Origin: Paraphysomonas bandaiensis
Taxonomy: Eukaryota; Protista; Chrysophyceae
NCBI GenBank assembly: GCA_965644295.1
Contig: CBFFRP010000355.1
Location: 57,405-121,404, forward strand
DNA: 64,000 nt
Reading direction: 5' to 3'
The notes under the pieces were generated by a model. It was not told the origin of the DNA. It saw only the letters and a list, made by a program, of their open reading frames with translations, and ran no database searches. This document shows, one piece after another, positions 3,091 to 62,009 of this stretch. The first letter of the stretch is position 1; every line of letters starts with the position of its first letter. Made by a program: the position numbers and the translations under genes.

Positions 3091-3514
3091 CTACAATGAT
3101 TATGGGCGTGTGAAATATGTCACCGTAGCATTTCTGCCCAAAACGTTTTCATCCATACACTCCATCTTGCCTGGTTTATGATTTTGTCATGTTTAAGCGC
3201 ATTTTTATTTTAATTTCATTACATTTGTGTCACTAATATTTTACTCTCTGCTGTCACAGTTGGCCGCTAAACTTCGTTCGAAGACGTCGAAAACGTACAC
3301 AAGACGTATGCTTCATGTTAAAAGGGTTAATAGACAAAAAAAATTAAATAATCAAGGGACGTGTACAGTTAGGATAAGTTACATGAGCTACAATTCGTCA
3401 TGTAATACCAGCATCACTACATATTACATATTTCCAGTGTAGCAGCCTAGTCCTGTACAGACACGTACCATTCATGCATACCGTACTACATGAAATTATA
3501 CTTGTATATTTAGC

Positions 3515-4594: not shown

Positions 4595-5142
4595 TTTATG
4601 TACCAGAGAGAACGAGAGGGTTCGGCTGCAGGCTAGAGTCAGTGCATGTGTGTCTATGAGAGGTACGAGCTGAGATTACCATAATATTACAATGTTGCTG
4701 TGTTGTATGTGCTGTTAACGGCATTGACTAACGTCAATCTGACACAGAATATGGAATGAGATGATGAGATATGCATGCAGTGATGTCCAACTAAGAGTAG
4801 AGTATGATTTCCAGTGCTCGGCTCGATCTGCTATCTGAAGGCAGGGTGGTTTATAGCACTGGAGTGGATATGTACATGTAGTTCACATGCATATCGTGTA
4901 CTGCTGTTTTCATACTCTTAGAGATTTGTGCAGTAGTACAGCTGTACTACATCTCCTCAGTATGGATGTGTTTTTGTGTTTTTGTACACATGGAGTGTAC
5001 TTACGTTCTTTATACGAGTACAGCATCCATGCAGCGTCTGCGTACAGCAGTGCATTAAGTCAGCAGGTCAGATGGGACGAATGGAAGCAAGCGATGTGTG
5101 TCCATCGAACTCACGTATAACTCACCTGACGAGAATAGAGTG

Positions 5143-21547: not shown

Positions 21548-24500
21548 ATGATGAGACTCACTGCTATATTTATTCTATTGCCGAGTTTATTTGGCGTGTG
21601 TTTGGCTGAGAAGATCTTTACTCAGCAATTGAACCCAGTGATAACCAATATAAACCCATGGTACAGTGGGATTGATGGTGGAACCCAGATAACCATATCT
21701 GGGGCTAATCTAGGATCATCAGTGCTGTTTACTGAGACAGTTGTGTTCATTGGAAACGAAAAGTGTGATGTAATTAGTCATTTTTCTGGGATGGAGAAGA
21801 TTGTGTGTATCACTCCGAAATGCTACACAGAAACATGCCGAAATGGGAATATATGGTCTGGAGCTAGTACTGTGGAGCTCAGTGTCTATGTATCTTCTGT
21901 GGAGGGCATATTAACAACATCATCTGTTTTTTATTATTACAACTACTATACTCCCTATGTGTACATGATGCACTCCTCCACATGGGGCAGTGCGACTTCC
22001 GTCGTGCATGCCAGAGCGCGAGTATTTGAACTAAGTGATGTAGACATTGTTATTGGGGACGGATATCACGGTTACCTTGGAACTGCGGGAGAGTTAAATT
22101 ATGATGAGTTACCGTATTCATCAAATGACCACTACTTATACTACCGCCCGCCTTCAGATATTTCAGGAGGATTCCATAATCTTTCCCTTTACTTTCAAGA
22201 CGACCTAAAGGACGGAAATCCATCTTTAGGTGTGGCCAATATGTTTGAAAACGATCGATATGACACTTCTAAGTACGGTAACTTCTATCTCTTTCAGTCT
22301 ACACCACAGGGCACATCATATTCTCTGTGTGTATTTCCTTCGATTGCGTCCGTCAGTCCCCATTTTGGGAGTATTGGTGGTGGCACAATTGTAACTATTG
22401 AAGGGACAGGTTTCTCGAAGGATAGCAGTGAACTTGAGGTCTTTGTTAGCGGGCAACCTTGTCACGTGGTCGCCTCTGATGTCCATACTATCCAGTGTAT
22501 GACCTCTCCTCGCTTCAACCAGACTTTCCTTTATTCTCTAACAGGCGGGGATACATTCACTCTTCCGGAATATTTGGAGCAGAATGAAATCTTCCCCTCT
22601 TCCCGGAAGTATGGATCGCCCGGATGGTGGGTGAAAACATGGAACTATGACAGTTATTACGCTGGGTACAGTGGGTTGGACGCTCATATTGAGTTGGCGT
22701 TCGGGTGGAGGCAGGGAGCGTACATGTCATTCTATGATCACGTCTTTGAGGGTTATTCTTGGCCTGATACCATTGGCTTTTCCACTTCATATGAGGTCTA
22801 TGCTAAAGATGCTGGAGCTGTGTTCATTGCGCCATATGCCGGCCACTACACTTTTTTTGTCGCCTCTGACGACCAGGGATACCTTTACGCTTCCTCCTCA
22901 GGGATGGAGATAGACGAAATTCTTATTGCTTACAACTCTCGACATTCAAGCTCATATAAATTTCATCGTGATCCCTCCAAACAGATATCGGAACCTATCC
23001 CTCTAGGCAAAGGAGAGAGACTTTATTTGCGATTTCGACATGTGGGTTTTCCTCATAGCGCTTTTATCACTAACCTGTGATTTATCTAGGTGAATACATA
23101 TGGATATGATTTTTCTCTGCTGGCTGTAAAGATTTCCCCAGCTTATGACTGCGATGGGGCGCTGATGAGCCACTGGGAACCTGGTAGCAATATCACAGTG
23201 TCGTGCGAAGGAAATGCTGTGGCCCCACACGTGCTGGAAGCGAACTTCCCTGACCGCCTGATCCAACTACATTCGACGCCAGAAGTGCAGGAAATTCACT
23301 TGGACTTTGAATTTCATCGTGAGAGACAGGTTTATTAGTTCTTTCTGTTTTTTAGCGCTAATGTGTGATACAGCTAATTAATATTACCGGTGCCTCCTCT
23401 GGAGATTTCTTACTAGTTGTACAAGGGCGACAATTGACGGAATACCTGTCAATGGATTCTAGTGCAAGCACAATTCGAAACGCACTGAACGCAGCCACGC
23501 AATCGATTAGTAGCTCTATACGTGAAACTTATAGCTTTCTTGTGTGGACGGAAAGAAGAGACACAAGTTTAGAAATATACGTGGAATTTTCGGTGGACAA
23601 TACATCACCACTGACGTTGCTACAGATTTATCCCGTGTCACTCGTTGGTATGTTATGTCATCTTAACTGACACTCCATAGTTATACGTATTTACCAGGAA
23701 GTAATCCCCATACTTCAGTTACAAGAATTCAAGAGCATACTCCTTTTCCCTCAGATAGTTTCGAAATATTATTCGGAGATGGTTCTGATAGCTCGGGGCC
23801 CATTATACCTTGGGATTCGTGGATATCCACTGTGGAGTCCAACATAGAAGGCTACTTCGACGATAACAGATACAACGTATGGCATATGTATGTATATACA
23901 TTCGTAACATCACTATATACTAGGTGGAAGTTACTCGCAGTGGTTGGTCGCTGACGGGTTATGTGTGGACAGTTAGTTTTATCACCCCGCGAGGTGATGT
24001 GCCTCAGATGAGAGTTGATGTATCAGGCATCAGTGGACCAAATGTAACAGGATATGTAACTACTCAGTCCAACGGAAGTACCAGTGAACTCTGGTTTGAG
24101 CCGATCCCCTCTTGGATGACAGAAGTACCTGTAGAGTGGGCGACTGCGGGAAAAGTCCAGAGTAATGTGGAAGTGTATCGGCGCAGTGCTGGTGGAGATA
24201 TTGTAAAGGCGGTTTGTGATGGTTCTGGTTATCGAGGAAGTGGATTTGAGGGGATGATTAAAGGAGGAGAAGCGGACTGTGCTTTTTCATACAACTCGAA
24301 TGCTACTGCAGTTGTGTCAAACTACTCGATTTTATCATATGTTGACGCTCAGACTGTGGAAGTTGGAATATTTGGTCACGGCTTTCTCAAGCAGGAACCC
24401 AACTCAACTATCACGGTTGCTATCGCTGGCAAGGTTTGCAACATAACGCTGGCATCGGATGAAAAAATAATCTGCAGAATTAAAAATGTTCCATGGGGAA

Positions 24501-27500
24501 GTCATGTAGTCGCAGTGACATTGTCGGGCTTAGGTAGCGCATTGCGAACAACTGATACTATGTTGAATTTCAGTCTTGATATTTATTCTGTTGATCCTCC
24601 CAGTGGAAGTCTGTCGGGTGGGCAGTGGATTACGATCACGGGTAAAGGCTTTCGTAACGATTCTACTGTGTCCATGGGCTCGGGCCTGTGTGATATTCAA
24701 TATCTATCTCCATCTCAGATCATATGTATAACTCCTCCTGTGAAATCGTTCCTCGGAAGAGACAATTCGACGAATTGTACGCAGACTAGTGAAAGTTGCT
24801 TGCCTTCATACGCCAATGTGACTGCCTGGGAAGAAAATACGACGATAGCTATCGATGGGTATGAATTTCCAGGGATGTATGTGCACGACATACTATCCAC
24901 TCCAACGATTGATGTTGTATCACCGCGAGATATATCTTCAGCATTAACAACACTTGTAGAAATAATTGGCTTGGGTTTTGTATCTAATTCATCTGTAAGT
25001 ATTGATGGAAATGAATGCATTGTTCAGGTACTTTATCCAGACATGATTGAGTGTCTTCTTGTGCGTTCTTTACCCACACAGCAAAAACACGGCAATGTGA
25101 AGGTCTATGTTCCGAATGTGGGATATGCATCCGAAGCTGGAGATGTAACGGAATTACCTGTGGTAAACTTTGGCTACGAGGTTCACAACGTGTACCCTTG
25201 GAAGGGAAGCTTAAAGGGAGGCACTAGATTATATATAGATGGATTCGGATTTATGGAGAACGGTATCGACCGACACACTGTGTCTCTTAAAGACAGAAAC
25301 TACATCTCCAGTGAGTATGAAGAGCTGCTCTTTGGATTAGGGCTGTCAGATAGGCCCGGTGGGATTGTGTACTGTGAAGTAATTGAGGTATCATTTAATC
25401 AGATTGTTTGTGAACTGGAAGAAACTATATCTGTTGTAAACGACACGTCGTATATTGTTTCCGTCGCAGTCAATGGAATGACAGCAATATGTGACGACAC
25501 ACAAGCGTGTAGCTACCAGCAAGCTGCCAGTCATACCCCTGTTGTGTATTCTACGCATGTGGTGTCGAGGGATAACAACACAGGACATATTGACGTACAC
25601 GTGTACGGAAACGAGAATTTGGTAAATGCTACCAATCCTGCATACTCCTTGAATCGGCAGTCTTGTGTGGTGATTGATCATGTTACAGACTATGTAACTG
25701 TGAGGTGTCCTAGTTCTCCCGCTGGATCATATGTACTGTCAGTATTCGTGGAAGGTTTGGGTAAAGCCCATGTGGAAGAAAATGCAACTGTATTGGTAAC
25801 GATGTGGGTCTCCGAGGTATCTGCCATGGGTTACAAAGGGTCACTTGGTGGAGGGACACCATTTGTTTTGACGGGCTATGGGTTCGGAAAATCTTGCTCA
25901 GAGAACACCGTCTCAATGCGTTTCAGTAACAATGAAATTATGTATCTCCCGAATACGAGCTTTGTTAATTGCGCTGTCAACACTTTGTTCCTTAGAACTC
26001 CTTCCGTAATTACGCTATATGGAGGTATACCATTTGACTTAAACTCCGCTGAAAACTTCTCTGTTGTGGAAATAGCTGTGTATTATAATGGTATGTCTGC
26101 CTCAACTGGACTTTCCTTTACTTTTTCTCCACTTTATACTCCGGTAGTTGCTGTTCAAGGGACCTCTGGGTTTGCGGAATCGAATATATCTTTAAACATT
26201 TCTATTCCTGAAGTCGCTGCGAATTCCAGAGATTTCTCAGTTACTGTAGGTGGCGAAACCTGCACTTCCCTCTCGAGCAAGCCAAATAGGAATACTTCAA
26301 TCGAACTAATATGTGATGCGCCTGCTCTTCCTGGAGACTTAAGTTACGGGATCGAAGCTTTAATATTACCTTTCGGGGTAGCGTTGACCTCACTTGCTTC
26401 GGTTCCTACCTTTTACTCTGAATTTGCCGTGAATCCATTGGACACAATCGATATCACTAGCAGTGTTGCTGGTGGTTCAGTAATTGACGTTATCGGAAAG
26501 GGTCTTTCAGCAGGTACTCAGGTGCACATCTGCGGTCAGCCCTGTATGACTCAAGTCTCCTCATATAATCATATTAGCTGCACCACTCCCCCTCGAATGA
26601 CTGTTTCTGCAGTCGAGCATTTTGAATCCATTGGAGCTAGTATTGATACCATCGAAGATATCGTTGGTGGCATTGTAGGTTCAAACGGGAATTATCTACG
26701 TAACCTCGAAGATGGAGATTATACGACGTATTTTTTCCACGATTCCATTCACTGCTACATTGGAATTGATTTGCCTGTTGGATTCGTTGCTCGCCCATAT
26801 CGCCTTCGGTTTTACCCTCGACTACAGTATGCTAATGATGTTGGTGGCTCCGTGTTTGAGGGAAGCGTTGATGGTGGAAAATCGTATATTGTTATCGACA
26901 GAATATTAAGTGCCCATGAAGGGTGGAATTATATGGAGGCCAATGAAACACTGAGTAGACAATGGTTTACGAGTTTTCGATTCCGGTCAACCGCTTCAGT
27001 ATCATCGAAATGCATGATTTCAGAAATTCGATTTTTAGGAACCGTGGCTGCTCGCGACGAAACCTGTGAAGTTAGTGTGACGTCATCAGAGTTTTCTTCT
27101 TCAGTCTTAGTTGGCAACATCACGTATGACGCTGTTGTGGGGACACCATTTGTGAAATCTATTAGCCCCAATAACGGTACGGCGCTTGGTGGAACAGCTG
27201 TATCTATTCGAGGGTATAACTTTGCGTCAATACAGAATATGTCTTCGTTGGGCAGGAGAGTAACAATGGATGGTATGAATCACAGCAGTGAAAAGGGGGC
27301 AATGGTGCATTTGAATGGTATGATGTGCCACGTGACGAGCATCACTGACTATGAAATTAATTGTACAACTGTTGCTCGTGATTTGGATCACCTTCATCAC
27401 TCCGAAACTTCTGTCCGTATTAACAGCCTAGGAATTGCGGTGACGGATTTAGCAGCAAAGTATTTGTATATTGATCGATGGAGTGATTTGACAACATGGC

Positions 27501-30500
27501 GCAATAAGGAACCACCTGTAGATGGGGACTTAGTGTGGATTCCTGAGGGCCAAGTGGTGTTGCTGGATATAGAGAGCCCAGTGTTATCACTTTTACTGAT
27601 TGAAGGTGAGTTGTATTTTGATCCTACGAGAGATGTCAGATTGGATGCACATTACATATATGTGAATGGAGGTCGACTGCAGGTCGGCACAGCCGAAGAG
27701 CCTTATGAACGAAATGCTGTTATCACACTGCATGGAGATAGGTATACATCTATTGAAATACCCCACATCGGGTCCAAGTGTTTGGCAGTGGCCGCGAAAG
27801 GTATGGTGCATTCCCATGGTAGCACTGGGGCACATGTTACTGACCACGACATGGGGTTTATTGAGATACATGGTTCAAAACGGTTGCGAACATGGACGAA
27901 ATTGAACGAAACAGCTAGTGCTGGCCTTGATCATATTGTCACATCTGAGGCTGTAGATTTCAAGGAGGGAGAGAGAATTGTAATAACAGGGTCAGAGATT
28001 CCAGTTGGAGACAATTTCCAGGAGGAAGTAGTGACAGTTATATCAACGTACAATTATCATACAGTAAAATTTTATCCACCGTTACAATTTACACATCGCT
28101 CAGAAATAGTGGTAGTCGAAGGGCGTGAACTTGATTTGAGATGTGAAGTTGGGTTACTGACTCGGAACGTGGTTATCCAGGGTGATGACAGTAGTGATGA
28201 ACAGCTTTTTGGTGTTCATACCATTGGAATGTCAGGAACGTACCGTATCGAAAATGCAGAAATCACGAAGTGTGGTCAGGCATTCAATCTCGGTCGATAC
28301 TGCACTCATGCCCACCATGCTGGCAACTTCGAGGGAAATTATATAAAGGCGAACAGTATTCATCGTAGCTACCAGCGTGCTGTCACGACACATGACACCT
28401 CCTATTGGGAAGTCCGTGATAATGTGGCGTACGATGTGATGGGCCATGCTTACTTTGTTGAAGATGGGAATGAATTCTATAATAGTATTTCTGGAAATCT
28501 TGGAATTCGCATAAAAACCTCAAGTGCTTTGCTGAAGTCAGACACGAAGCCGGCTGTCTTCTGGACAACTAATCCAAACAACTTCTGGTATGATAATGTT
28601 GGTGTGCATTCTCACTCATTTGGGTTCTGGTTCGAGCTGCCTTCGTCCCCTCCAGTTGGTGTCGTTAACAATATATGCAGTCACAACGAACACCTTGGTG
28701 AATTTTCTAATAACACCTTCCGTGCAAACGGACAACTGGGTCTACGTATCTATCCCAGATGGACCCCACATGTAGATCCTTGTGACGAGAACTCACCACC
28801 TGCGCCACAATACTTACGAACGATGCTGTCGTATAGAAACGCGGGTAACGGTATGTTTTCCAAGAATCATGGGGACCTACATCATTTGGGACACACTTTT
28901 CTTGAAAATGGTGGAACTGATATATCCATTGCACACTATGTTCATGTCGAATATAACTCGAATCCTGCATTTCTTGACACGTACATCATTGGATCGCTGA
29001 GCGATATTGCCCAGAATGCTTCGCTTGGAGCGAAGTTTGCTGTCTGGGCCCCTCAAGATGAATTCTTTTACATGAAGAATACTACGATTATTAATTTTGG
29101 TGTAACTGGTGCATTGTCTGGGTGTAATGACTGTGCTTCTGGGGAAGAGATGAACCAAGGGGCTTTCACATACCGATTTGAAGGTATGAATTTCATAAAC
29201 TCGGACAGGCGTACGCGATGGTCACCACACTACAAGCAGATATTCTGGGATTTGGATGGCTCTATTGCTGGACATGCGAACTCTTACGTCCTACAGTGGT
29301 ATGACTTCAATGCATGGTCACCACATTGCACCCCTCTTTCTAAGCGTAACTACGGAGATTCAATGTTGTGTGTCAATACCACAGTAAGAAGAGTGGAAAT
29401 CGATTATGTAGAGCCAAATCAAGTCGATTTTACTGATATCAAAGTGTATGGAAGTGATCGGAGTGCAGAAGTGTATTTTTTGCCTTTCGACTCATATGGG
29501 TGGGTGGTTCCGTTGGTGATGAACCAATCGTATGGTCTTGAGTGGCACGACGCTGGTGTGTCCCCAACTGAATTCGAATTTAATTTAGGTGCGACAGAGT
29601 ATATCAAAGAAATGTATGACAGGGGTGTAAATGAAACAGTGAGATTGAGTTTTATGCCTAATCGACACGACTATATTCCGTATTCGTATAGCGTTCACTA
29701 CGGTGCTGAGCACGAATACAGCAGCCGGAATTTCAGTGCGTCACTTACAGATAGGATGGGAACTAGCTCATTTGTTAATAACACACTGAATGTAATTTTA
29801 TCTTCCAATGGAGCAGATTGGAATCTGGACGAGCCTTTTGCTGTTGCTGTAGAGGCCGAGTTGTGTCCTCCGAGTGGATGCCCGATTCCACCTTTGCCAT
29901 CATTACCCTCAAACTATTCGTTATGGAGCGACCCGTCGTCCTGGCCAGATGGAATCCTTCCGGTCGCAGGTTCAGATGTCGTCATTGAAGCGGACATGTG
30001 GATTCATATGGACATATCACCTCCGCCGTTTAGATCGGTTACCATATATGGTGCGCTGACATTCAAGAGTGGAATGAGCAGTACCCTTACATTGGAAGCA
30101 AATAACATCATCGTTTATGGTAGTTTTGAAGTGTCTGGAGTAGATAAAAAACCCTTTAACGGAAATGCCGAAATAATTTTAAGCGGCGACAAATCTTCGT
30201 CGATTCCAATCGTCGTCGGCGAAGACAGGTTTATAGGGTCTAAGGTAATGGCTGTTATGGGAAATTTAGTGCTGGTTGGAAAACAAATCGCTGATACTTG
30301 GGCTCGATTAGCAGCCACAGCCAACCGTGGTGATAACATTGCTGTTATCAATTCCACGCAGATATCGTGGGAGGTTGGGGATGAAGTAGTTTTCTCACCA
30401 ACGGGATATTTTGGCGTAGACGGCGAATTGTGGAGTAATGAAGATGGTGCTGTTGAGTATCGAACCATTACAGGAATTAGCAAGAGTGGAGAATTGACGG

Positions 30501-33500
30501 ATATCACGCTTGATAAACCTCTCTCTCAACCTCATTTGTGCACAGTTGTTGAGAACCACTCGTTTTGTGGGGCTGTGGGACTGGTGACAAGGAATATAAA
30601 AGTGTTTTCGCGAGACTCGGAGGATGATAGTACTTCCAGCGATTTCGGATTTGGAGGACATATTGTGGCTGTAGATCTTGTCGAGGAGCTCTATGAAGCT
30701 GAGAGATATTTTACAGGTAGTCTGTATTTGGTTTCCGTTGAGATGAAGAACCTTGGAAAAGCGAATTCAGATCATTACGCGATTGGTTTTGAGTACTCTG
30801 GCTCTCATGGAAGCAGTGTTGTGACCAACTGCTCATTGAACAGAAATTATAATTTTGCATTGGGGGCCTTTGGCACAAGAGGCCTTGTCTTCGATAATAA
30901 CATTGCCGTTGATAATTGGGGTGGTGGTGTTTACATTGACATGTCTTGTTCGAATTTTTCTCTTGTACATAATTTAGTTGTTGGAGTTCATCAACTACCA
31001 TCTGTCCTGAAGAGCAGTTTCCCTTGGACGAGACCTGTTGCTGCATTTACGATCGCAAGCACAGATGGAATTATTCAACACAACCTTGCTGCGGGATCTG
31101 TAGACCAAGGTTTTGCGATTGCCACCAAACTTTTCATTCATTCAGATGAAAGTCTTTGTCAAGTAACAAGGGGGCTACCATATACTCATTCCGCTGCAAT
31201 ATCACCGCAACAGCAATTTTTGGTCAATGAAGCGGTCGCGTGTCGAGGTGGCTTATCTGTGATGAATATGGGGTCAGCAGAAAGCTCGCCTTCTGACTGT
31301 GCAGTTGTTAATGGAATCAAAGCTTGGCGGAATGCACATACCGGAATAATGGCGATTGCTGCGGAGGCCAATGTCATTGTTGCTAATGTAATTCTTGCTG
31401 AGAATCATATTGGTGTAGTTGCTGATTATTTCAAGGTATCTTCAAATGCATTTTCTGGTGTTATTTCGTCAACAATAATTGGAAGTATGCATTCGAATGG
31501 GTATTCTGATTTGCCAGACAGTGCGTGGGATAGAAAATGTCAAGTATTTTCTGAAGCGGACCCACATGGATTGACATCTGTGTGTAGATCGACTATCAGT
31601 TCGTTTTACCAGCGCGTTGGCATATTACTACCTCAGTTTACCAATCGTGGCAAAACTTGTGCCGTGGAAGGTCGATGGGATCAATGCCAGCCGGCAACTA
31701 CTCCTGACCGGTTGTGTGCATTGCCTTACGAAAAGCGATATGGTCTTCCGATGGATATGCAGTACTCTGAAATGCATGTCCATGACACTGTTTTTACTGG
31801 GTTTCGAAGTGCTGACACAATACCAGACACCACGCGGAGTTCCGCCGCTATTGCCATCAATCCCTCACAGCTGGACCAGCAGCCCAGCGTTGTGGTGTCA
31901 GGACTGGTATGGAGTGGTGTGGACGATGGCCGTATGGACAGAGAAGCGCGCTTTGGGTTTAAATCAACTGGCGCTGGTTGTAATTCGCGTACCTGTATGG
32001 GGCTGGACATGGGCCTAATCTATGACATCGACGGATCCGGGGCTGGATACGAACATTCTGGTCAGATTGTATTCGGCAACCCTGGATATACAGCACCACA
32101 TCCCTTATGTTCTACAGCTTCCGAGCTAGGAGTTGGAGTGGCATTTTGTTGGGGCAACGGTAATGAGTCCAGCACTACTTCATTTCGTCAGTATAGTGCA
32201 GTGTGGCGGGATTACCAGACTTTCTTAATTGGGCCCATTCAAGTGACAAGACGCTTTGAGTCTCTTCAAGAAAATCGAACATATGCATCCTATGGACCAA
32301 CTGATGACAGCTGTCCAAAACGATTTTACTTTAGTCGGTTTCCTCTATATATTTCCCCTGGAATGAAGCATGATATAGTGACCACAGGCACGGTACCTAC
32401 GACATGGTTCTTTCGCTGGGATTCACCCTTCGACTCGGACTCCGCTGTGCTAGAATTTTTTATTCACGGATCGAACAGCGTCAGAGTGTTTATTGCATCG
32501 ACTGAAAGGGGGCCCTATATCGAGGTTCCTCGCTTCACAGATCGCTACCCTACTCTCGACGACCCTGCGGGATCAAGTGCTCGAAATCCACAGAAGAGAA
32601 CTCTGACTGTTACTATACGCGGAGGAAGCAAGCGATTTTACAAATTTGTTGTGGTTCCAGTCGTTGCTATTAATATGAAGATCGAAACAGATTTCGACTC
32701 TTTTAACTCCAATAATTTTATTGCCAACGTCGCTTTCCTATTGAACATTCCGCTGGATAGAATCAAAATCGCGGAAGTGCGACGTGGGAGCGTGATTGTT
32801 GATTTTTACATAGAGGCCTCACCTGAATCCAACTCCAATATCACATCGACTGACAATTCCACCGACGCAGAAACTGTCATTGCTAATCAAGTAACAGAGC
32901 TGCAAGCCGTTGCATCTAACTTTTCCAAAGCTGTTTTCTCGGGAGCGTTGGAGACAACGCTCGGTGCCTCGATTGACACCCTGACTGTCGTTGAGCCCGT
33001 TATACCAGAAGTTATTCCAGACATCAGCAATGCCGACGATGACAATGACGACGACTTGAGCAGCAATACTACTAATACAGACGGGGGTAGTTCAACAAGC
33101 AATGGAAATGTGTTATACTTAGTTTCCAAACCCCCCACCAACTTCCCTACCTCGTCTCCGACAGTGTCTCATCATCCTACTCACTCCCCAACTCCTATTC
33201 CCACAGGTACCCCGACAGCCCCAACATCATTTCCCACTACGCAGGCGCAGACGCAATTGACTTTACCGGGCAGCTGCTCTCTGTCTGGAGTCACTGTCAG
33301 CAACTTTTCGAAAAATTATTCAGACTCATTTACGGAAAGTATTGCGAGCTCTATGAGCTCGAGTTCTAACCGAGAGTTTGATAGCTCTCACGTGATCATT
33401 CGCAGTGTGGAAGATGTATTGCGCAGGGTCTTATTTAACTCAAATCCTTCGACCATATCGAAGCGTGAGTTGTCTGGGTCTGGAGTAGTTGTCGTGTTCG

Positions 33501-34378
33501 ATATCGTATTCATTGTTGAACAGTTTGGATTTGAAGTGGATAATGTTGTAACTAGCATACGAAATCAGCTGGCACTCTCTATGTCGACTGATGTGCTACA
33601 AGATGCACTTAATTCTGCGCTGCAGTCTCGCGTAGGTGACTCCTTCTCTCCTATAAGCGTTGTGGGATTAAATGTCAACGAAGATGCTGCTGAGTTCAGT
33701 CAGGTACGCACAGCGGCGCCCACTCCTCGGCCTACGTCGGAGAAAAAATCTTCTGGTGCAACTGGTGATGCAAAGGGACTGGATGATTGGGTGGTTTGGA
33801 CCATCATAGCTGTGTCCACAATTTTCCTGGTTGCTGTAGGTATTGCAGGCAAAAGTTATTTTGATAATGCTGGTCAGAATGTGGGCGTGACCCAACTGAA
33901 GTCCAGAAAAATTGAGGTTGAGCCTCTGCCTTCATCTGTTGTGGTTAGAAACGAAACGCACAGTGTGGACGAATTGCGGGGAACGACACATGTAGCCCCC
34001 CAGCCTTCGGTTCAAACTGATGCCAGTGGCAATCCGGTATCCTTGGGAATATTCCTCAACCGGGTTAGTCCACATCTTGCTATTGATAGCAACGAGGTAA
34101 GACATTTGCGTATGGGAAAGATTGCTGACGTGACTGTATGTAGTGCTCCGACAGTAGTGAACTCTCAATTAGCAAGAGTAACTCTCCAGCTGCTCCTAGA
34201 AATCCTAATGTAAGCTAACGTTAAACAATTTGTAGTTCTGTGTAAGTTTCTGTGCGTTCAGATCGCATCTTTTGATGCAGCTCACATCGGCCAGCCCACA
34301 CGGCCCGATGTTTATATACGATCGACTTCAGTCGATTTAGAAAGAGGTAAACAATCCCCTCTAGCGCGACGCGGGTAG
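21548..34378 (+). CDS. Fibrocystin-L (PKHD1L1)-like giant type I membrane protein
   Basis: Signal peptide; repeated IPT/TIG starts (GIDGGTQITISG, GSIGGGTIVTIEG, GSLSGGQWITITG); PA14-like YTFFVASDD; two G8-like domains (RWSDLTTW, LWSDPSSWPDG) each followed by beta-helix repeats; P/T/S-rich stalk; transmembrane helix WVVWTIIAVSTIFLVAVGI. Several short 5' introns; probable 3' introns from 34097 give a stop at 34376-34378. Confidence 0.85.
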
Positions 34379-53239: not shown

Positions 53240-53659
53240 CAGCTCGGAGTAACTAACGAGAACCACGCTGCTATTACACTTGTGTGTCTGATATCCGCAC
53301 CGTCGGTCTGGAGGCTCTATGGGATTCTAGTCACATATACATATATGTTCACAGTATGCTGTGTAGATACTACTGTGTAGGCCTATAGCATACAGCGTAT
53401 AGCGTACAGCGTATAGCGTATAGCAGTGCCTAACCGTATATTACACACAACAGTATACCTGGTATACTGCTGTAGTATTATATCTTGTCACAAGCACTGG
53501 ATACATCCCAACAATATTTTATATGATATACCGGTATACCGTTGTATACTGCCTCTATACAGAGTGATTGTCCAATTTTAAGACAGTACTGGAATCAGTG
53601 AATCCAATCAGCCATATGAAGTGAAGTGTGAGTGCCCTCATATACCGCTGCACACATAC

Positions 53660-53787
53660 ACACATACATACATATATCCATAGAGCCGTATAAGGTCCAA
53701 AGACAAAGAGTGCAGTGGGGGTGTAGACACATACATACATATATCCATAGAGCCGTATAAGGTCCAAAGAGTGCAGTGGGGGTGTAG
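53660..53787. repeat. Two-copy tandem duplication (67 + 61 bp) just upstream of the RdRP-fusion start
   Basis: ACACATACATACATATATCCATAGAGCCGTATAAGGTCCAAAGA(CAAAGA)GTGCAGTGGGGGTGTAG at 53660-53726 and 53727-53787. Confidence 0.9.
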
Positions 53788-53834: not shown

Positions 53835-56800
53835 ATGCAAGGCCTAACAAACCCTATCGGTGAGTTACATGAGCTCGTGGCGAAGTTGTCTCCGGGTACT
53901 CCATTGAACTTTAAGGAAGAGAAGATGATTGCGGGCTTTGTCTGTACCGCTTCTGTATATATATATAACAGAGAATATAGTCGACAAGGCGAGCCGAAGA
54001 GCACAAAGAAAGAAGCGAAGAAAAGTGCAGCATCATTATTATTGAATGATATTAAAGTTACGGATAGTGTACAGCCGACTGAGCCAAATGATACTGATAC
54101 AAAAGATGATTCGGTAGCATCTTATAACGCATTGGAGCAAACCAGTGATTGTTACGCTGATGAGTTGGCAGCCAACAGTGAATCAAGTTGTGTTATATGC
54201 ACTCAATGTTCTAGTGTCCTTGGTTCATTAGTCGATTTTATTTTATTTCAGAAATCGGAATCAGAGATCGAGTTTTCTTTAAAGGAAAGCTGCATTAGTT
54301 CTTACATTTCCACAGAAAAGTTGAAAATAAAAGATAATCTCCACAACAGCTCCTCCAGGTTTCACACCTCGTTTTGGAATGTGGTTTGTGGGAAATGTAA
54401 TAGAAAGTTGGGTGTGGAAAAATGGAATGGACTTTCCAAAATGGTTGTGTTTGGTTGTAATAAAGTACATGTGGACTGCTTAAAAGAGTTTGCAGGGAGA
54501 AAGTGGGTTACAATGAAGAATCATTTGCATCACATTGGCGTTAAGGTAATTTCAGAGTATACATCTTTGTCGACAGATGTGGAATATAATCCACACAAGG
54601 AGTTAGTTGTTGCAGCTTCATCGGAGTGTTTTGAATGGAAGGATTTAGTCAAGAATGGTCTTAAGCCGCGCCCCTATCAGATAGATGCATACCACGCATC
54701 TCTGATTACCAATATCGTGATAGCTATGCCAACTGGGTTTGGCAAAACACTGATAGCGTCGATGACACTGCACCGAATGACCCTGCTGAATCCTGAAAGG
54801 TTGGGTATTTTGATTGTGAGTAGAATTCCTCTTGTCTATCAACAAGCGGCTGCTATTGAAGAACACACATGGTTGCCTGTCTGCAGGCTCTGTGGTGAGA
54901 CAAGTACACCGTATTTGATAAAAAAGATTAAAAATAGATGCGCCAATATCATTGTTGCAACTGCCGGGTCGCTCTTGGATATACTGCAAAAGAAAATATT
55001 ATATATATCCAATTTTAGCTGTATGGTATTTGATGAATGTCACCACGTTAACAAGAAGCACGACTATAATCGCATTTTGCTGGAGTATGTCAGCAAGTGT
55101 CCATCGAAAATAGGTCCTCGTTTAATTGGCTTATCTGCTTCCGTTGTGTCCGCTAAAACAGTGGCCACAGCTGCTGAAAATGTTCGTAAGTTGAAGATAG
55201 CGTTTCGGGATGCAATATTATGGAATACTCGCTTTGATTTCGATCAAAATGAAACAAAGTGGCACGTTGAAGTGAACACCTGTAACCAAGAGGAGATGAA
55301 CGAATATTTGTTTCAAAAGTTAAAAGGCTACATATCGTGTCTGTCTAAATTAATAGGTACAGAAATGCATTCAATGGACAGTATAATGGATCCACAATCG
55401 TCATGGGCTGCAATACTTGGATGGGCAAGAAAATTGCGACGCCAAGTTGACAGCAGTATTAAAGCGGACGTGGAGTGTTTGATAGGGCAAGTGGAAGTTG
55501 CTGTTGCGGCTCTGGAGTGTAATGAACTCCTTGGTCCATACTACGTCTACAAGTTGTTACTTGAGTCATCTCGTGCTGATGATATGGACGCTGCCATTCC
55601 TTTACCTCTCTTACCCCAACTGGAAAGTAAGTACAATATTTCAGAGCTCATTGAACGTGAAAGTTCTGTTGAAGACACTGCGGAACTTCTATCACATCGT
55701 GTGCTCAAGCTTGAGCTGGAGATTCGGAATCTCATTAATATGAGTACAAATTCAAGAGTAATTATATTTGTAGACACGAAGAAGGCGGCCAAAATGCTTA
55801 AGAGTAGGTTGGATATATCGATACGTGAGTGGAAATCTGCTATAATAGTTGGGCACAGTGGGTACGATGGCATGAGCTGGGGAGAGCAAAAGAAAATACT
55901 GGAAAACTTCAGATGTGGAAAGATACGGTTGCTGATATCTACCAGCGTATTGGAAGAAGGTCTGGATGTACAGAGTTGTGACCGAGTTTTTAGATTGGGT
56001 GGCCGATGCTCACTTATTCAAATGGTGCAAAGTCGAGGACGTGCCCGCGCTCAAAATAGTAAGCTGCAGATGATTTTAACGGAAAAAGAACAAGACCGTA
56101 TGATTAAGTTGATGGCTGAGGAAAGGAATTTGCAGCTAGTTCTTGAAGAGGAATGTCAAAGAGAAAACTATGATAGCATAAGGCGTAAGCTAGACAAGCT
56201 GTCTGTGCCGCAAGTAAACGTGGATAAGGATGAAAACAACAGTATGCCGTGTGCTCCAGTTGATGATTATAGTAATTTTACCGAACACTACGCTTTAAAA
56301 CTTTTTGTCCACGGTGGTGGTGACCATAAAATGGTAGACTATTGTCAAAATGAATTATCTGATTACGCGAAACTCCATCATTTTGAGCAGACTTCTATAA
56401 ACGCATCTGTTGATTTACAGTGCTCAGCTTTCGACAAGGACACCGCGGTTTTAGTTGCCAGCTTTTCCTCAAACACCAAAAGTTTTTTCCCTATGTTTTG
56501 CTCTAACTGGAAGTTTCAGTTTCAAATTCGTACTAACGATGATGTCCACCTCAACGATGTCTATATGGCCGTCCCCTCTTCTGAGGTGTTCCCGGAAGGC
56601 CATGTAAATGTGGAACCGATAGGGGGTATTACAGTTGGCTACTTAGTAGATAAAAGACGTTTCGAGAAGTGCTACCGTCTTGGCAGTGACGAGTTGGTTT
56701 ATTCGTCACTGACACTTACTCCTGGAAAGTCCTGGAAACTTACTGCTACCCACAAAGACGGTGATGTTCATATTAGTGACCCAGTGACGAAACTCAACTC

Positions 56801-59800
56801 TTTTGCTTTGATTACTTTTGACACAGTTTCAAACACAATCACTCTTTATCTCATCCTCTCATCCCCTCCAGCGGTTGTAATTTGTGACCGTGTTGAAGGA
56901 AAAAGTGAGCGTGTATCTTTACACTCTCTCTCGAAATCGAATATATATCAACTGGCCCAGAAGGATTTGGAAGCTCTCAAAGGACTTCCTGTGATTGCCA
57001 TATCTTTTCCACTATCGGAGTGGGAAACCCTTTTGAATGCTGTTGGAAACAGGAATATATTAGGAGTGAGAACATACATAACTCGTGTCCATCAGACAGA
57101 GCGTCGCCTAGATACCTATGAAAGGAATGTGATTAATTCTTTCTCAGAGAAAGACCAACTGGAGTGCATCTGGGCTCTTGAATCCCTGAAAGCTCACAGT
57201 TTTATGATACCTTTGAATCCACACGTTATTTTGACATTGCATCGATATATCCACAATGCCTTGAAAGATGGAAAAGGTATTATTGCTGGCATTACACGCG
57301 CTTTATACCGCTTGCCAGTGGTACTCGCACATTCATCTCCTTGGACAGATGCCTTTGAAATGTTCCGCAACATTCTATCTAGCGTCGAAACCTTCCCGAA
57401 CGATTTCTTTGGCGAAGAGTATATAAGTGTTCCTCGTGTTGTAGTTACGCCATCAAGAATACTCTGTCAGCCCTACACTTGGGTAAAGAGTAATAGACTT
57501 CTGCGAATTTTTACACCCGACTTCACCTTCATTTATGTTGCATTCAGGGATGAAGATGGACAGTATTTGTTTAACACACACGTGTTCACTAGTCGTTATC
57601 AAAATATTCTAGATTGTGGCCTGGAAGTATGCGGACGGCTGTTGTCATTTGTCGCTGGATCCGGCTCTCAGATAAGAGGACAGGTTGGAACGTTTGTACT
57701 GGGTGATGAATCTGTAGCCAGCAGTATTCGAGATCGGATTATTCCGAGAACTCAATTTGAAGGGTCTATGTCGAAATATATAAGTCGTCTTGGTCAATTT
57801 TGCACTGCAGATTATCCCACTGTCGACTTATCTGCAGCGAGATGCAAGGTTATAGATGATATATACACCTCTGGTTCTCCTCGCCATCTACTTACAGATG
57901 GAGCTGGAATGATAGCACCGAAGATGTTTGAGTATTTACAAACTAAGTTTTCGAAAGTCGTCAGCAGCAGTTGTTGCGCAGTGCAAGTTCGTGTTCAAGG
58001 CCACAAGGGGACCCTCTCTGTTGCTGACATATCCCACTTTCCGGAAGTAGATGTCGTCTTTCGAAGGAGCATGGAAAAATTTTCTAGTAATGACATGACT
58101 CTTTGTATTGCATCATGTGCTGAATACAACCCGCTGAAGCTGAATAGAGATTTCTTGAATCTTTTATTTTCTATTGATACCAGTGAAGGATGGACACCCT
58201 ACAATTATCTGTATCATATACAAGAGAAGGAGCTCTGCAGACTAGCTAATATTCTAATGGACGAAGATGCTGCACTACAGGAATTAGACAGCATCGGATA
58301 TGCAACAGATTCATTGCGACGGGCAAAGCACATGATACTGAATGAGCCTTTTTTTGTCAACCTTTTGGTGACTTATTATCACCAAAAGTGCAGGGCCCTC
58401 CGTTCCAAGACACAGATTCCGATTTCTGATGGATGTTTGTTAATGGGAATTCCTGATCCTTCTGGTCTCTTGAAAGATGGTGAGGTTTTTTTGCAACCGC
58501 ATTCGCCTGAAAGCGAGACGCCTACATGTGTTTTGGGTAGGGCGCTAATATGGAGAAATCCTTGTTTGGATCCCGGGGACCTGCGGTGCGTTCAATGCGT
58601 AGATATTCCCGACTTAAGGAGATACGTCAATGTTCTTATTCTCCCAGCATCGGGTACTTGTCGGCGCTCTCTAGCCAGTGAATGTTCTGGTGGAGATTTG
58701 GATGGAGACAAATTTTCTATTATGTGGGATGATTCCGTTGTACCTCCGTCTCGTTTGACGCCGTGGGATGCAGTGGACTATGATATGAACGCTCAGAAAG
58801 CGAAAGAAAGTTACCCTGCTGAAGAAAGTGGTTCCATGGGATCTGTTGTCGCCAAAACTATGTGCAACACTGCCTTAGGTCGTATCGCGAGAAAGCATAT
58901 GGCGTACTGTGATCAGAAAGATGCCGGTGCTGCTGATCCTTATGCCCGTGAAGCCGCACTTGCACAGGCCCTTGCTGTCGACTACCCGAAAACTGGCATT
59001 CCACCTAGAATACCTATCAAAGTTGACCGGATAAAATCCTACCCATCCTTTATGGAGAACACGACGAGGGACTCATACGTGTCACGTAAACCCCTCGGAA
59101 TGTTATATGACCGGTGTATCTCTGTGGTATACGACACCAATTTTGCGACCTTGACTACACAAGTACTACCACAAGACGTCTTTTTGATTCCCGACAGGGA
59201 AGTATATCAAGACGAGGCCAATCAAGTCTATAAACTCTACAGGGATGATATAATGAATTATATGATTCGCTTTGGACTGAAGTATGAAAGTGAACTCATA
59301 CTTGCCATGCCACTCTCACTGCAGAATGAGTTGTCTTCTGACATTGGGGCCGTTCAGCGATCCCTTAAAATAGCGTGGGAATCAATTCAAAGGAAATATC
59401 AAGAAATTTTTTACCAGGGTTTGCATGACGGCACTTGCAGAGCTGCTGCATGCAAGGCGTCAGCGTGGTACTCTGCTGCATACGATATAGAGAGGGAGGG
59501 ATATGACGGTTATCGAGTCTTGAGTTTTCCATGGCTCGTCGCCGAACACTTAAGTGGGCTATGTGATTCGTGCAATATTTCCACGGGTTGGATATATGAG
59601 CTAGTTGGTAGTGAGGTGTTAGCGCTATGGAAACAAGCCGTTCCTATGATCAAGCATATTGTGTCTGTGAAAATGGAGGTTTTTGAAAAGATAAAAGCGA
59701 TTGTGTTAAAATTTAATGACAGTTTTCGTATTGAGCCGTATGGGTCTGTCGCTCATAGGTTGTGTGATACTTCTTCAGATCTTGATATTTTCGTGGAGAA

Positions 59801-62009
59801 TACAGGGGAAAATAGAATGGATCGAATAGAAATGTTGAAAGAAGTAGCAAGTGTGCTACTGGATGTATCATCGAACGTAAGGTTAGTAGCAGATACAGAT
59901 GTACCTGTGGTGAAAGCGGCGTTAGATTCCGATACTTCTGGGAATGAGGCCGAATATGTTGACGTATGCTCCAACGAGGATGGCGTCAATAAAGCAAGGT
60001 TTATACAAGCTTTCTACCGGAATTCTGCCTGCAATATTGTGATAATGCATTCGTTGATAGAATGGGCAAAGTGCTGTGGCATTCTGCAAAAGTCTCGTGT
60101 ACGTAAGGGAGAATTTCACGCACTGGTACTGTCAATTCTCTACGACCCTGAAATTGTTGCTGGAGATAATAGGAACGAGGGAGTCGATATTGATTCGGAT
60201 ATTATTGATAGTACAAAAAAATGCAAAAGCACTGAGGTTGGTGAGAAGCTGCTTCGTTTTTTTAGATTGGGACAGACAAAGGGGGGTGCTGATTTTGAAT
60301 ACACGTGGCCTGTTAGAGGGTCTCCACAACATAAAATATCCAGTATTCACATGACCGATTTCTCGAAATGTTGCGCCCAGGCGTACCACTGTCTTGCCGT
60401 ATCGCGTTCGTGGAAGGAATTACTGCTCCACATCAGTCAGAATGAAACGCAACAATCGTGTGTCATTAAGCTCCCCAATAACTTAATCGTTACTGAGGAG
60501 CTTGAGAAAGTAAGGCAGTTCCATACCCTACTCTTAGAAAATAAAACTGGGGCACGAGTGGAGTTTGACATGTCAAGTGCAATATCGTGTGAAGTACGGG
60601 GATGGGGAACTAGAAACCAACTTCGCTTGTTGGAATCTGAAGTGTACCGATTATTTAATATGGGCAAGTACTACCTGACGGGAAGTATCCGCATGAAACC
60701 GAGTGTTTACTTTATGGAGGGGTCATCTTTTATGTTTTGCAGGTATGCTTCAGGATCACATGCCAAAATGAAGTTTAAACCTTATCTTTCGAAAAACTTC
60801 TACAATCGTCACTGTTTCAACGAGCGGGCACGACCGTATTTGATGTCAGCGAAATGTCAATCCTGGGAAGCGTGTTTTAAGTTAACATTAAAAAAAAAGA
60901 TTCGTGAACAGCTTAGACTCTTGCTTCTCGAAGATGGCGAAGAAATCTCGATGTCAGCAAACTTTGGTACTTTCTACGGAATCAATGCTACGAGTTCCTT
61001 TGGAGCGGGGGCTATACTTGGCATATCGCTGCATGAAATTGAGAATGCCTACAAAGATAACAGAAGAAATAAAGAAAGGGCTGAATATGATGACCATCGT
61101 AGTGTATCAGCATCGTATGACGTGGATCGTCAGAGCAATTGTCATTCCTCCGTGGAAGTGACTTCTGCGGATCACAGGGATGACTCTGACAGTGAGCGTC
61201 GCAAGAGTATTGCTGACTCGAAGAAAAGTAGAAATGGAAACTTCACCAGCTCTTTCTGGTCAGGCATCACTGATGATGACGTTAATTTTTCAAATGTGTA
61301 CGAAACTGTGAAAACTTTATTATCGCGTATTGGCTATATTGAGTCGAGTGATGATGAGAGGAAAGTAAAGATTCAATTTGCAGCTTCTTTGAGCTATCAA
61401 GCCAGTGTGGTTGCAAATACTGACGGCTCAATTGAAGAGGTGTATGAAAGACCGCTAAATTGGGTGAGTGCGACATTATTGACTGGCAATGGGGGTGAAG
61501 GGGATGGCGTTGTTGGCCATGACGAATTCCCACTTTCGTCGACAGCCAGTTCCATTCGACGACAAAACGACATAAGGTTTAAAGTGGTCACCAAAAAGAA
61601 ACTGCCTACAAATCACAAACTATTCAAACGGGCAACGTGCAATGACAGGTCTCCAGTTGTTATCAGTGAGTCAAAATTGAAGCTAAGCGAATTCCTGCAG
61701 CCCGAAGATAGAGAGCGGGTTTATTTTGCGCGAAATGTTTTGTCCCGAAAAGTATTTGAATATGCTGTAGATGATGATGGGTGCCCGCTGAAAGTGAAAG
61801 CATCGCTTGAGGAGGCCGAACATTTCTCGGGCCGGGAGCTGTCGCACTTTGTTAACGTTATTTCCCTCAATTTGGATTTTGATTCCCGCCCGTTAGTCGA
61901 ATGGGTAAACAGGCCGCCTCAACCTGCAAATGCTCTGGATGCATGGCTCGATGCTGTAATTTCCCACGCAATATTGATATCGGACTTGATTTGCACTAAC
62001 AGTGGGTGA
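53835..62009 (+). CDS. Multidomain RNA-silencing enzyme: dsRBD - Zn (RLR-CTD-like) - DExH helicase - cellular RdRP - nucleotidyltransferase - KH-like - unknown C-terminus
   Basis: dsRBD NPIGELHEL..KKEAKKSAA; CTQC..CGKC; PRPYQ, MPTGFGKT, FDECHH, GLSAS, STSVLEEGLDV, QSRGRAR; RdRP VTPSR, SNRLLR, TDGAGMI, QVR..GHKG, RNPCLDPGD, SGGDLDGD, AVDYPKTG, SFPW; NTase YGS-x10-DLD. First ATG at 53835; no in-frame stop over 2724 codons. Confidence 0.9.
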   Translation: MQGLTNPIGELHELVAKLSPGTPLNFKEEKMIAGFVCTASVYIYNREYSRQGEPKSTKKEAKKSAASLLLNDIKVTDSVQPTEPNDTDTKDDSVASYNALEQTSDCYADELAANSESSCVICTQCSSVLGSLVDFILFQKSESEIEFSLKESCISSYISTEKLKIKDNLHNSSSRFHTSFWNVVCGKCNRKLGVEKWNGLSKMVVFGCNKVHVDCLKEFAGRKWVTMKNHLHHIGVKVISEYTSLSTDVEYNPHKELVVAASSECFEWKDLVKNGLKPRPYQIDAYHASLITNIVIAMPTGFGKTLIASMTLHRMTLLNPERLGILIVSRIPLVYQQAAAIEEHTWLPVCRLCGETSTPYLIKKIKNRCANIIVATAGSLLDILQKKILYISNFSCMVFDECHHVNKKHDYNRILLEYVSKCPSKIGPRLIGLSASVVSAKTVATAAENVRKLKIAFRDAILWNTRFDFDQNETKWHVEVNTCNQEEMNEYLFQKLKGYISCLSKLIGTEMHSMDSIMDPQSSWAAILGWARKLRRQVDSSIKADVECLIGQVEVAVAALECNELLGPYYVYKLLLESSRADDMDAAIPLPLLPQLESKYNISELIERESSVEDTAELLSHRVLKLELEIRNLINMSTNSRVIIFVDTKKAAKMLKSRLDISIREWKSAIIVGHSGYDGMSWGEQKKILENFRCGKIRLLISTSVLEEGLDVQSCDRVFRLGGRCSLIQMVQSRGRARAQNSKLQMILTEKEQDRMIKLMAEERNLQLVLEEECQRENYDSIRRKLDKLSVPQVNVDKDENNSMPCAPVDDYSNFTEHYALKLFVHGGGDHKMVDYCQNELSDYAKLHHFEQTSINASVDLQCSAFDKDTAVLVASFSSNTKSFFPMFCSNWKFQFQIRTNDDVHLNDVYMAVPSSEVFPEGHVNVEPIGGITVGYLVDKRRFEKCYRLGSDELVYSSLTLTPGKSWKLTATHKDGDVHISDPVTKLNSFALITFDTVSNTITLYLILSSPPAVVICDRVEGKSERVSLHSLSKSNIYQLAQKDLEALKGLPVIAISFPLSEWETLLNAVGNRNILGVRTYITRVHQTERRLDTYERNVINSFSEKDQLECIWALESLKAHSFMIPLNPHVILTLHRYIHNALKDGKGIIAGITRALYRLPVVLAHSSPWTDAFEMFRNILSSVETFPNDFFGEEYISVPRVVVTPSRILCQPYTWVKSNRLLRIFTPDFTFIYVAFRDEDGQYLFNTHVFTSRYQNILDCGLEVCGRLLSFVAGSGSQIRGQVGTFVLGDESVASSIRDRIIPRTQFEGSMSKYISRLGQFCTADYPTVDLSAARCKVIDDIYTSGSPRHLLTDGAGMIAPKMFEYLQTKFSKVVSSSCCAVQVRVQGHKGTLSVADISHFPEVDVVFRRSMEKFSSNDMTLCIASCAEYNPLKLNRDFLNLLFSIDTSEGWTPYNYLYHIQEKELCRLANILMDEDAALQELDSIGYATDSLRRAKHMILNEPFFVNLLVTYYHQKCRALRSKTQIPISDGCLLMGIPDPSGLLKDGEVFLQPHSPESETPTCVLGRALIWRNPCLDPGDLRCVQCVDIPDLRRYVNVLILPASGTCRRSLASECSGGDLDGDKFSIMWDDSVVPPSRLTPWDAVDYDMNAQKAKESYPAEESGSMGSVVAKTMCNTALGRIARKHMAYCDQKDAGAADPYAREAALAQALAVDYPKTGIPPRIPIKVDRIKSYPSFMENTTRDSYVSRKPLGMLYDRCISVVYDTNFATLTTQVLPQDVFLIPDREVYQDEANQVYKLYRDDIMNYMIRFGLKYESELILAMPLSLQNELSSDIGAVQRSLKIAWESIQRKYQEIFYQGLHDGTCRAAACKASAWYSAAYDIEREGYDGYRVLSFPWLVAEHLSGLCDSCNISTGWIYELVGSEVLALWKQAVPMIKHIVSVKMEVFEKIKAIVLKFNDSFRIEPYGSVAHRLCDTSSDLDIFVENTGENRMDRIEMLKEVASVLLDVSSNVRLVADTDVPVVKAALDSDTSGNEAEYVDVCSNEDGVNKARFIQAFYRNSACNIVIMHSLIEWAKCCGILQKSRVRKGEFHALVLSILYDPEIVAGDNRNEGVDIDSDIIDSTKKCKSTEVGEKLLRFFRLGQTKGGADFEYTWPVRGSPQHKISSIHMTDFSKCCAQAYHCLAVSRSWKELLLHISQNETQQSCVIKLPNNLIVTEELEKVRQFHTLLLENKTGARVEFDMSSAISCEVRGWGTRNQLRLLESEVYRLFNMGKYYLTGSIRMKPSVYFMEGSSFMFCRYASGSHAKMKFKPYLSKNFYNRHCFNERARPYLMSAKCQSWEACFKLTLKKKIREQLRLLLLEDGEEISMSANFGTFYGINATSSFGAGAILGISLHEIENAYKDNRRNKERAEYDDHRSVSASYDVDRQSNCHSSVEVTSADHRDDSDSERRKSIADSKKSRNGNFTSSFWSGITDDDVNFSNVYETVKTLLSRIGYIESSDDERKVKIQFAASLSYQASVVANTDGSIEEVYERPLNWVSATLLTGNGGEGDGVVGHDEFPLSSTASSIRRQNDIRFKVVTKKKLPTNHKLFKRATCNDRSPVVISESKLKLSEFLQPEDRERVYFARNVLSRKVFEYAVDDDGCPLKVKASLEEAEHFSGRELSHFVNVISLNLDFDSRPLVEWVNRPPQPANALDAWLDAVISHAILISDLICTNSG

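Follow-up and report, generated by a model that had tools for sequence, protein, structure and literature searches.

A single open reading frame (ORF) of the chrysophyte Paraphysomonas bandaiensis carries the intact active sites of three enzymes on one polypeptide: a RIG-I/Dicer-type superfamily 2 (SF2) helicase, a cellular RNA-dependent RNA polymerase (RdRP) and a terminal nucleotidyltransferase (TENT). The gene lies on contig CBFFRP010000355.1 (GenBank assembly GCA_965644295.1), within a stretch of 64,000 nt that contains no Ns (contig positions 57,405 to 121,404, forward strand; hereafter the window, to which all coordinates refer). The protein is most likely the Paraphysomonas representative of an ancient family of eukaryotic proteins in which one chain unites parts that elsewhere are assembled as RdRP complexes. 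An earlier note on this DNA, made from its letters alone, had described such a single-chain silencing machine; its stop-free reading frame and the catalytic motifs that it listed were all found where it had placed them (Table 1), and the three active sites proved to be conserved throughout the family.

Domain content and active sites

The earlier note had suggested an HMM scan and structure prediction as checks. In the scan, dsrm, DEAD, Helicase_C, RdRP and MTPAP-like_central all scored above the curated Pfam cut-offs, in that order; on the structural side, the RdRP was recognized by PF05183 and by its match to RDR2, and the nucleotidyltransferase (NTase) by profiles and Foldseek. PF05183 covers aa 1204–1760 over profile positions 1–581 of 582 (E 1.5e-109, 367.8 bits against a cut-off of 23.8), and a PDB sequence search aligned plant RDR2 structures with aa 1245–1907 (E 2e-55). 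The catalytic DLDGD (aa 1621–1625) is part of a GGDLDGD motif that is invariant across 18 homologues. The full domain and its active site place the protein among the cellular RdRPs. The conserved linker in front of it gave single weak matches to PH_fung_RdRP and PH_met_RdRP and none in the PDB sequence search, and may be the usual PH-like and helical N-terminal region of RdRPs.

Table 1. Domains of the fused polymerase and other ORFs of the window
Feature	Residues (aa)	Window position	Strand	Remarks
Whole gene, single ORF	2724 + stop	53835–62009	+	0 internal stops
Double-stranded RNA-binding domain (dsRBD)	7–77	53853–54065	+	Pfam dsrm aa 7–72, E 5e-5, above cut-off
Zn beta-tent domain, before helicase	~118–245	54186–54569	+	C122, C125, C185, C188, W224
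RIG-I/Dicer-type SF2 helicase: Hel1, Hel2i, Hel2, pincer-like helices	~276–780	54660–56174	+	Profiles; Walker A 54726, DECH 55032, QSRGRAR 56028
Conserved linker	~800–1200	56232–57434	+	Alignable throughout main clade
Cellular RdRP, catalytic and head domains	1204–1915	57444–59579	+	PF05183; DLDGD 58695–58709
TENT-type (Cid1/GLD-2/TUT) NTase, catalytic and central domains	~1918–2202	59586–60440	+	Profiles, Foldseek; GS 59742, DLD 59778–59786
Degenerate KH-like domain	~2205–2282	60447–60680	+	No GxxG loop
Beta-barrel, predicted TTM fold	~2344–2721	60864–61997	+	R2539, R2581, R2633
ORF with ankyrin, FHA, G-patch matches		5098–6843	+	
TIG-containing ORF		21548–23080		Precedes the 3429-aa G8/TIG ORF
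Uninterrupted ORF with G8, TIG, beta-helix domains	3429	23924–34213	+	Fibrocystin-L-like

The NTase has a GS motif, three catalytic aspartates and the catalytic plus central helical fold that, in sequence and model, mark it as a TENT. Profile searches matched it to GLD-2 (3e-21), TUT4, CutA and Cid1 (over some 240 positions for GLD-2, TUT4 and Cid1), Pfam to MTPAP-like_central (aa 1942–2029, E 6e-9), and Foldseek comparison of its model to Cid1 (TMt 0.62), TUT and mtPAP. The third aspartate, D2043 (59961–59963), was missing from the earlier note's list. Retention across the family is close to complete: 78/78 for G1970 and S1971, 78/79 for D1982 and D1984, 78/80 for D2043 and 79/80 for K2053, the last being a family-specific residue. 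The nucleotide-recognition loop, assigned by position, reads WP in the clade of our protein (W in 65/77) as opposed to the canonical DPF...N, and the DP loop is retained in Riccia, the chytrids, Pelomyxa, Cavostelium and Plasmopara. Four long helicase–RdRP members (P0115, P0139, P0167 and P0217) give low scores or none over the NTase region, which suggests decay of the enzyme in some lineages.

The earlier note had this NTase as the terminal domain. The enzyme call stood and the position did not, as about 520 aa follow, comprising a KH-like domain and a tunnel-fold barrel that had been overlooked. The KH-like domain gave weak profile matches to the KH domains of hnRNP K, KHSRP and FUBP1 (E 0.02–0.4); one family member matches KH_PARP14 (1.3e-5), and the topology in our model is KH-like. 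The predicted structure of aa 1915–2724 (pLDDT 88.9, pTM 0.87) packs the NTase with the KH domain and barrel. Foldseek, run on this whole model and without display of the aligned residue ranges, returned RESC-A chain 8fn6_1 amid the TENT matches (E 2.9e-6, TMt 0.56), and from its viral library many giant-virus mRNA capping enzymes or stand-alone 5'-phosphatases, each of them weak (E 3e-3 to 0.2). Pfam and PDB sequence searches gave no match to the barrel.

The barrel has a strand of the pattern R/H-F-G in which the glutamates of motif A are missing; their positions are S2372 and S2374 in our protein and are acidic in 7/40 and 1/40 members. At motif C one acidic residue is kept in 35/41 members, where ours has Ser. 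D2579 is kept in 36/41, and R2539, R2581 and R2633 are basic in 37–39 of 41; this mapping onto the Cet1 motifs comes from alignment, not superposition. RESC1/2 have a Cet1-type tunnel fold that lacks two of the three metal ligands, and in RESC2 this dead barrel uses basic residues to bind the 5'-triphosphate of RNA (PMC10201420). Because a RESC/viral triphosphatase fold is predicted without the metal-binding glutamates, the barrel is probably catalytically dead and a binder of 5'-triphosphate ends.

Several variants of the C-terminus were seen. Two Hydra isoforms (P0206 and P0208, X4 and X3) end early in the barrel, at ~2300–2360 aa compared with 2566–2599 aa for full forms, as do P0010, P0011, P0061, P0063 and P0066; these are either barrel-less isoforms or ORFs cut at an intron. 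The short matches that we checked as candidate stand-alone barrels (P0194, P0195 and P0199) were rejected: each immediately follows pieces of RdRP and NTase and resembles an exon of this gene in a spliced form. In three assemblies from eukaryotes (L003, L004 and L005), apparently spliced versions adjoin an ALG10 gene. P0148 has an additional calcineurin-like phosphoesterase behind the barrel (aa ~3180–3320, E 8e-11), which could supply end processing or be a gene-model fusion.

At the other end of the protein, the dsRBD model has the alpha-beta-beta-beta-alpha order and matches Loquacious dsRBD1 in Foldseek (TMt 0.62). A dsrm match was also detected in P0004 and, weakly, in the closest homologue, P0001 (39% identity in full-length alignment). 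Animal, oomycete and chytrid members lack this domain, their sequences starting with the Zn domain or a short way ahead of it. The dsRBD is an addition of one lineage, found in the chrysophyte-type clade alone. On the same strand as P0001 and 120 bp upstream of it, an ORF with three dsRBD matches (L001:8591-9880, +) could represent either an upstream exon or a partner gene.

The Zn domain proposed in the earlier note is real by family alignment and fold, with a weak Pfam match (Yippee, E 0.045). Its four cysteines hardly vary across the family, nor do G193 and W224, and the best Foldseek matches of its model are the C-terminal domains (CTDs) of DRH-1, DRH-3, RIG-I, LGP2 and MDA5 (E 1e-4 to 3e-3). 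In Pfam, 18/41 members match RIG-I_C-RD and 21/41 Yippee, all weakly; the family profile aligns along the whole LGP2 CTD, His and KW included. A specific kinship to the CTD of RIG-I-like receptors (RLRs) is likely but not proven, since Yippee and MsrB have the same fold and similar sequence scores. The helicase matches DEAD (aa 280–437, E 5e-19) and Helicase_C (aa 630–737, E 2e-15), and its motifs I, II, III and VI are intact. From Hel2i to the pincer, the profile of its C-terminal half matches the ancestral Dicer helicase (2e-53) and LGP2, MDA5 and RIG-I (1e-41 to 1e-36), and a PDB sequence search with aa 276–777 likewise returned Dicer and RIG-I helicases. Neither Pfam nor PDB searches of the ORF gave a match to PAZ or to tandem RNase III domains, as would be expected of a Dicer, and the protein is not one.

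The family and its relatives

Homology searches returned dozens of proteins of 2.3–3.4 kaa with the same domain order, from Spumella, Hydractinia, Rhopilema, Macrostomum, Hydra, the dinoflagellate Effrenium and the diplonemids Diplonema and Sulcionema, as well as Plasmopara (RDR1), three chytrids, the liverwort Riccia, Pelomyxa, Cavostelium and Acytostelium. With homologues this widespread, we rejected a unique chrysophyte invention. The rarity implied by the earlier note is not supported either: the Zn–helicase–RdRP–NTase core is spread across eukaryotes, for example in oomycete RDR1 and a Hydra RdRP. Plasmopara P0164 and P0193 and Hydra P0072 match each of the eight domain profiles, with the order unchanged. 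Several of the scored proteins had served in profile building; P0215 and P0216 had not, yet they match the NTase, KH and barrel profiles. In P0216, from Acytostelium, helicase, RdRP and NTase are all present. The Riccia sorocarpa protein (P0097, on a 46.9-Mb scaffold) gives a land plant the full architecture minus the dsRBD, through either retention or horizontal transfer.

Quick IQ-TREE phylogenies (SH-aLRT support, unrooted) of the RdRP and of the NTase–KH–barrel region group the same 28 proteins, from our chrysophyte and others, cnidarians, Macrostomum, the dinoflagellate and diplonemids, and set oomycetes, chytrids, Riccia and amoebozoans in a second group. Of 17 splits with strong support, 13 are shared by both trees and one is in conflict, a congruence which indicates that the domains travelled together as one gene. 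These unrooted trees fit an early origin followed by losses as well as they fit horizontal transfer. In the RdRP tree, from a sample picked by similarity to our protein, RdRPs of plants, fungi and arachnids are interspersed with the fused proteins. We would give only a small chance to the bolder idea that the full fusion dates to early eukaryotes as an ancestral self-contained sensor-effector for 5'-triphosphate or double-stranded RNA (dsRNA). On this idea, animal RLRs and nematode DRH proteins would stem from its front half through a shift of the CTD to a place after the helicase, and certain RdRPs that stand alone would be its trimmed descendants.

The same set of activities occurs as subunits in S. 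pombe RDRC (Rdp1, Hrr1 and Cid12, where Hrr1 is an SF1 helicase) and in Tetrahymena Rdr1–Rdn complexes. C. elegans likewise has RdRP, helicase and TENT in RRF-1/EGO-1, DRH-3 and MUT-2/CDE-1, and DRH-3 shares the helicase class and CTD fold of our protein. In all three systems these activities are separate subunits, whereas here they form one chain, and we know of no tunnel-fold domain in any of the three. RIG-I, MDA5, LGP2 and DRH-1 have the same Hel1–Hel2i–Hel2–pincer helicase and Zn CTD fold. Unlike in these receptors, the CTD-like domain (aa 118–245) is N-terminal to the helicase, there is no CARD and the outputs are polymerases; because of the domain's position and the missing CARD, we do not class the protein as an RLR. 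The predicted barrel, with its conserved basic residues, resembles RESC1/RESC2, Cet1 and giant-virus triphosphatases in fold, and RESC in its loss of metal ligands. It differs from all of these in having no detectable sequence similarity to them and in being fused to a silencing polymerase rather than serving editing or capping; as the ExE ligands of motif A are gone, we do not class it as an active triphosphatase.

Part of the family has been described. Bollmann et al. (2016; PMC4791657) cloned a P. sojae RDR cDNA and reported helicase–RdRP fusions also in Dictyostelium, Hydra and Nematostella, so that the fusions mentioned in the earlier note for Dictyostelium and oomycetes are indeed published; their account covers helicase and RdRP only and never mentions a nucleotidyltransferase. 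Like the members of that group (oomycete RDR1, RrpA-C, Hydra and Nematostella), our protein has DEAD and Helicase_C before the RdRP with GxGKT and DECH intact, and it has full-length homologues in Plasmopara RDR1 and a Hydra RdRP; by these sequence characters it belongs to the group. Beyond the published description, we find the CTD-like Zn domain, TENT, KH-like domain and barrel in Plasmopara and Hydra, to which our protein adds the dsRBD. Two amoebozoan RdRPs with PAP_NTPase, noted in a figure legend (bioRxiv 10.1101/2023.10.19.562841, Extended Data Fig. 10), also combine helicase, RdRP and NTase in one RdRP family; that legend offers neither a catalytic or structural analysis nor a comparison across kingdoms, and it names neither a CTD-like domain nor a barrel. 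In the literature searched, which did not extend to subscription journals, we found no paper describing the full architecture, nor any account of the CTD-like domain or barrel, or of the NTase as a feature of the whole family. What appears new here is the conservation of the NTase across the family and the match of its tree to that of the RdRP, the RIG-I-type CTD fold placed at the front, and the KH-like domain with a probable 5'-triphosphate pocket. The gene belongs to a widespread family that had already been described in part, and is therefore less singular than the earlier note had thought.

Possible roles in RNA silencing

By analogy with the subunit systems, we favour, with confidence that falls somewhat short of even, a fused silencing polymerase that senses, tails and copies aberrant RNA and feeds Dicer. 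The dsRBD, CTD-like Zn domain and helicase would load, using ATP, on a duplex or structured end of transposon, viral or aberrant transcript RNA; the TENT would then put a short untemplated tail on the 3' end of this target and so license it as template. The RdRP, starting de novo, would make a complementary strand with a 5'-triphosphate, and this new end would be gripped by the catalytically inactive tunnel barrel, against which the NTase and KH domain pack. The duplex would finally pass to a separate Dicer, yielding small interfering RNAs (siRNAs) that spread silencing. Several elements have a precedent: the CTD of DRH-3, one of the top fold matches of the Zn domain, binds dsRNA with the 5'-triphosphate that characterises secondary siRNAs (PMC8464030), MUT-2 tails recruit the RdRP in C. 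elegans (PMC7988573), and RrpC, a Dictyostelium helicase–RdRP, is required for 21-nt DIRS-1 siRNAs and for spreading (PMC3950715). Comparison with RrpC makes an amplifier acting in cis plausible.

Several observations weigh against this reading. The recognition loop has W in the clade of our protein where the second clade has D; our Zn domain lacks the His and one Lys retained by most members; and the TTM fold of the barrel is a prediction drawn from the fold search alone. The dictyostelid domain data are those of Acytostelium P0216 only, D. discoideum RrpC being likened to our protein as a helicase–RdRP. Furthermore, RdRP1-3 of Nematostella, though induced by the viral mimic poly(I:C), yield no detectable secondary siRNAs, and the RdRPs of Branchiostoma show no siRNA signature, both being compared here as RdRPs and not by full architecture. 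It is these two animals that lead us to give a real, if minor, share of belief to surveillance without amplification, in which the protein finds and tails the ends of viral or aberrant RNA and makes short complementary RNA from it, to trigger decay or a dsRNA alarm, with no secondary siRNAs. A front half built like an RLR sensor would suit this role, as would the antiviral uridylation that runs parallel to RNAi (PMC7988573); the need for RrpC in making and spreading siRNAs (PMC3950715) speaks against it, and the likeness to the two animals holds for the RdRP alone. Rather doubtful in our view is an amplifier of the same kind in which the NTase acts not on the template but on the RdRP product or the siRNA, adding a tail that would limit, sort or stabilise it. 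CDE-1 does bind the RdRP EGO-1 and uridylate its siRNAs, but the MUT-2 precedent points to template tailing (both PMC7988573). The packing of the NTase with the KH domain and barrel would hold the product provided that the new 5' end is captured by the barrel; template and product tailing are not separable by sequence.

In C. elegans, PIR-1 trims the 5'-triphosphate of RdRP products, and a similar trimming by the barrel as an active RNA triphosphatase would be compatible with any of the other models. We consider it improbable: the fold matches to viral capping triphosphatases and the conserved acidic residues, one of motif C and D2579, favour activity, but the motif-A glutamates, each of them essential in Cet1 and the mimivirus enzyme (PMC10201420), have been lost across most of the family, and our protein has Ser at the aligned motif-C position. 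Least credible is an assembly chimera or read-through from a neighbouring gene. Transcript evidence from the organism itself does span only aa 2373–2724, where 351 of 352 residues are identical to a transcript-derived protein of Paraphysomonas MMETSP1103 (taxid 36769), so that the host is that species or one very near to it and at least the 3' part of the gene is transcribed. But the frame is stop-free over 8.2 kb of even GC content, the domain trees are congruent, and the single polypeptide of the earlier note is borne out by dozens of collinear homologues from independent assemblies, including a complete transcript ORF in Cavostelium and RefSeq models in Hydra; the last two rule out a chimera of this architecture.

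RdRPs pose an open problem in lineages other than plants, fungi and nematodes: cnidarians and lancelets retain them but show no amplification of siRNAs. For the RdRPs of Hydra, Macrostomum, oomycetes and chytrids, a tailing enzyme, a RIG-I-type fold and a probable 5'-triphosphate pocket now provide residues to mutate, and untemplated tails and triphosphate binding offer read-outs of RdRP function in non-nematode animals and protists. The occurrence of a RIG-I-type CTD fold together with this helicase outside animals bears on the origin of RLRs. In addition, one polypeptide is a simpler system than a multi-subunit complex in which to study how tailing and RdRP initiation are coupled.

Genomic surroundings

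The neighbours of the gene are ordinary nuclear genes: an EIPR1-like gene directly upstream on the opposite strand, an AAA ATPase, an FMO, a PP2C and the G8/TIG protein of Table 1. A viral or transposon origin was rejected, as the RdRP is of the cellular type and the neighbours (EIPR1, AAA ATPase, FMO and PP2C) are host genes. No second RNA-silencing gene was seen among the scanned ORFs of the window. The start codon is the ATG at 53835, with A at -3; a GTG start at 53787 was rejected as a product of bacterial-code ORF calling. A 67-bp tandem duplication in two copies (53660–53787) ends 47 bp 5' of the start codon, and a 7-bp repeat (53384–53424) lies 5' of this duplication, in the region common to the EIPR1-like gene.

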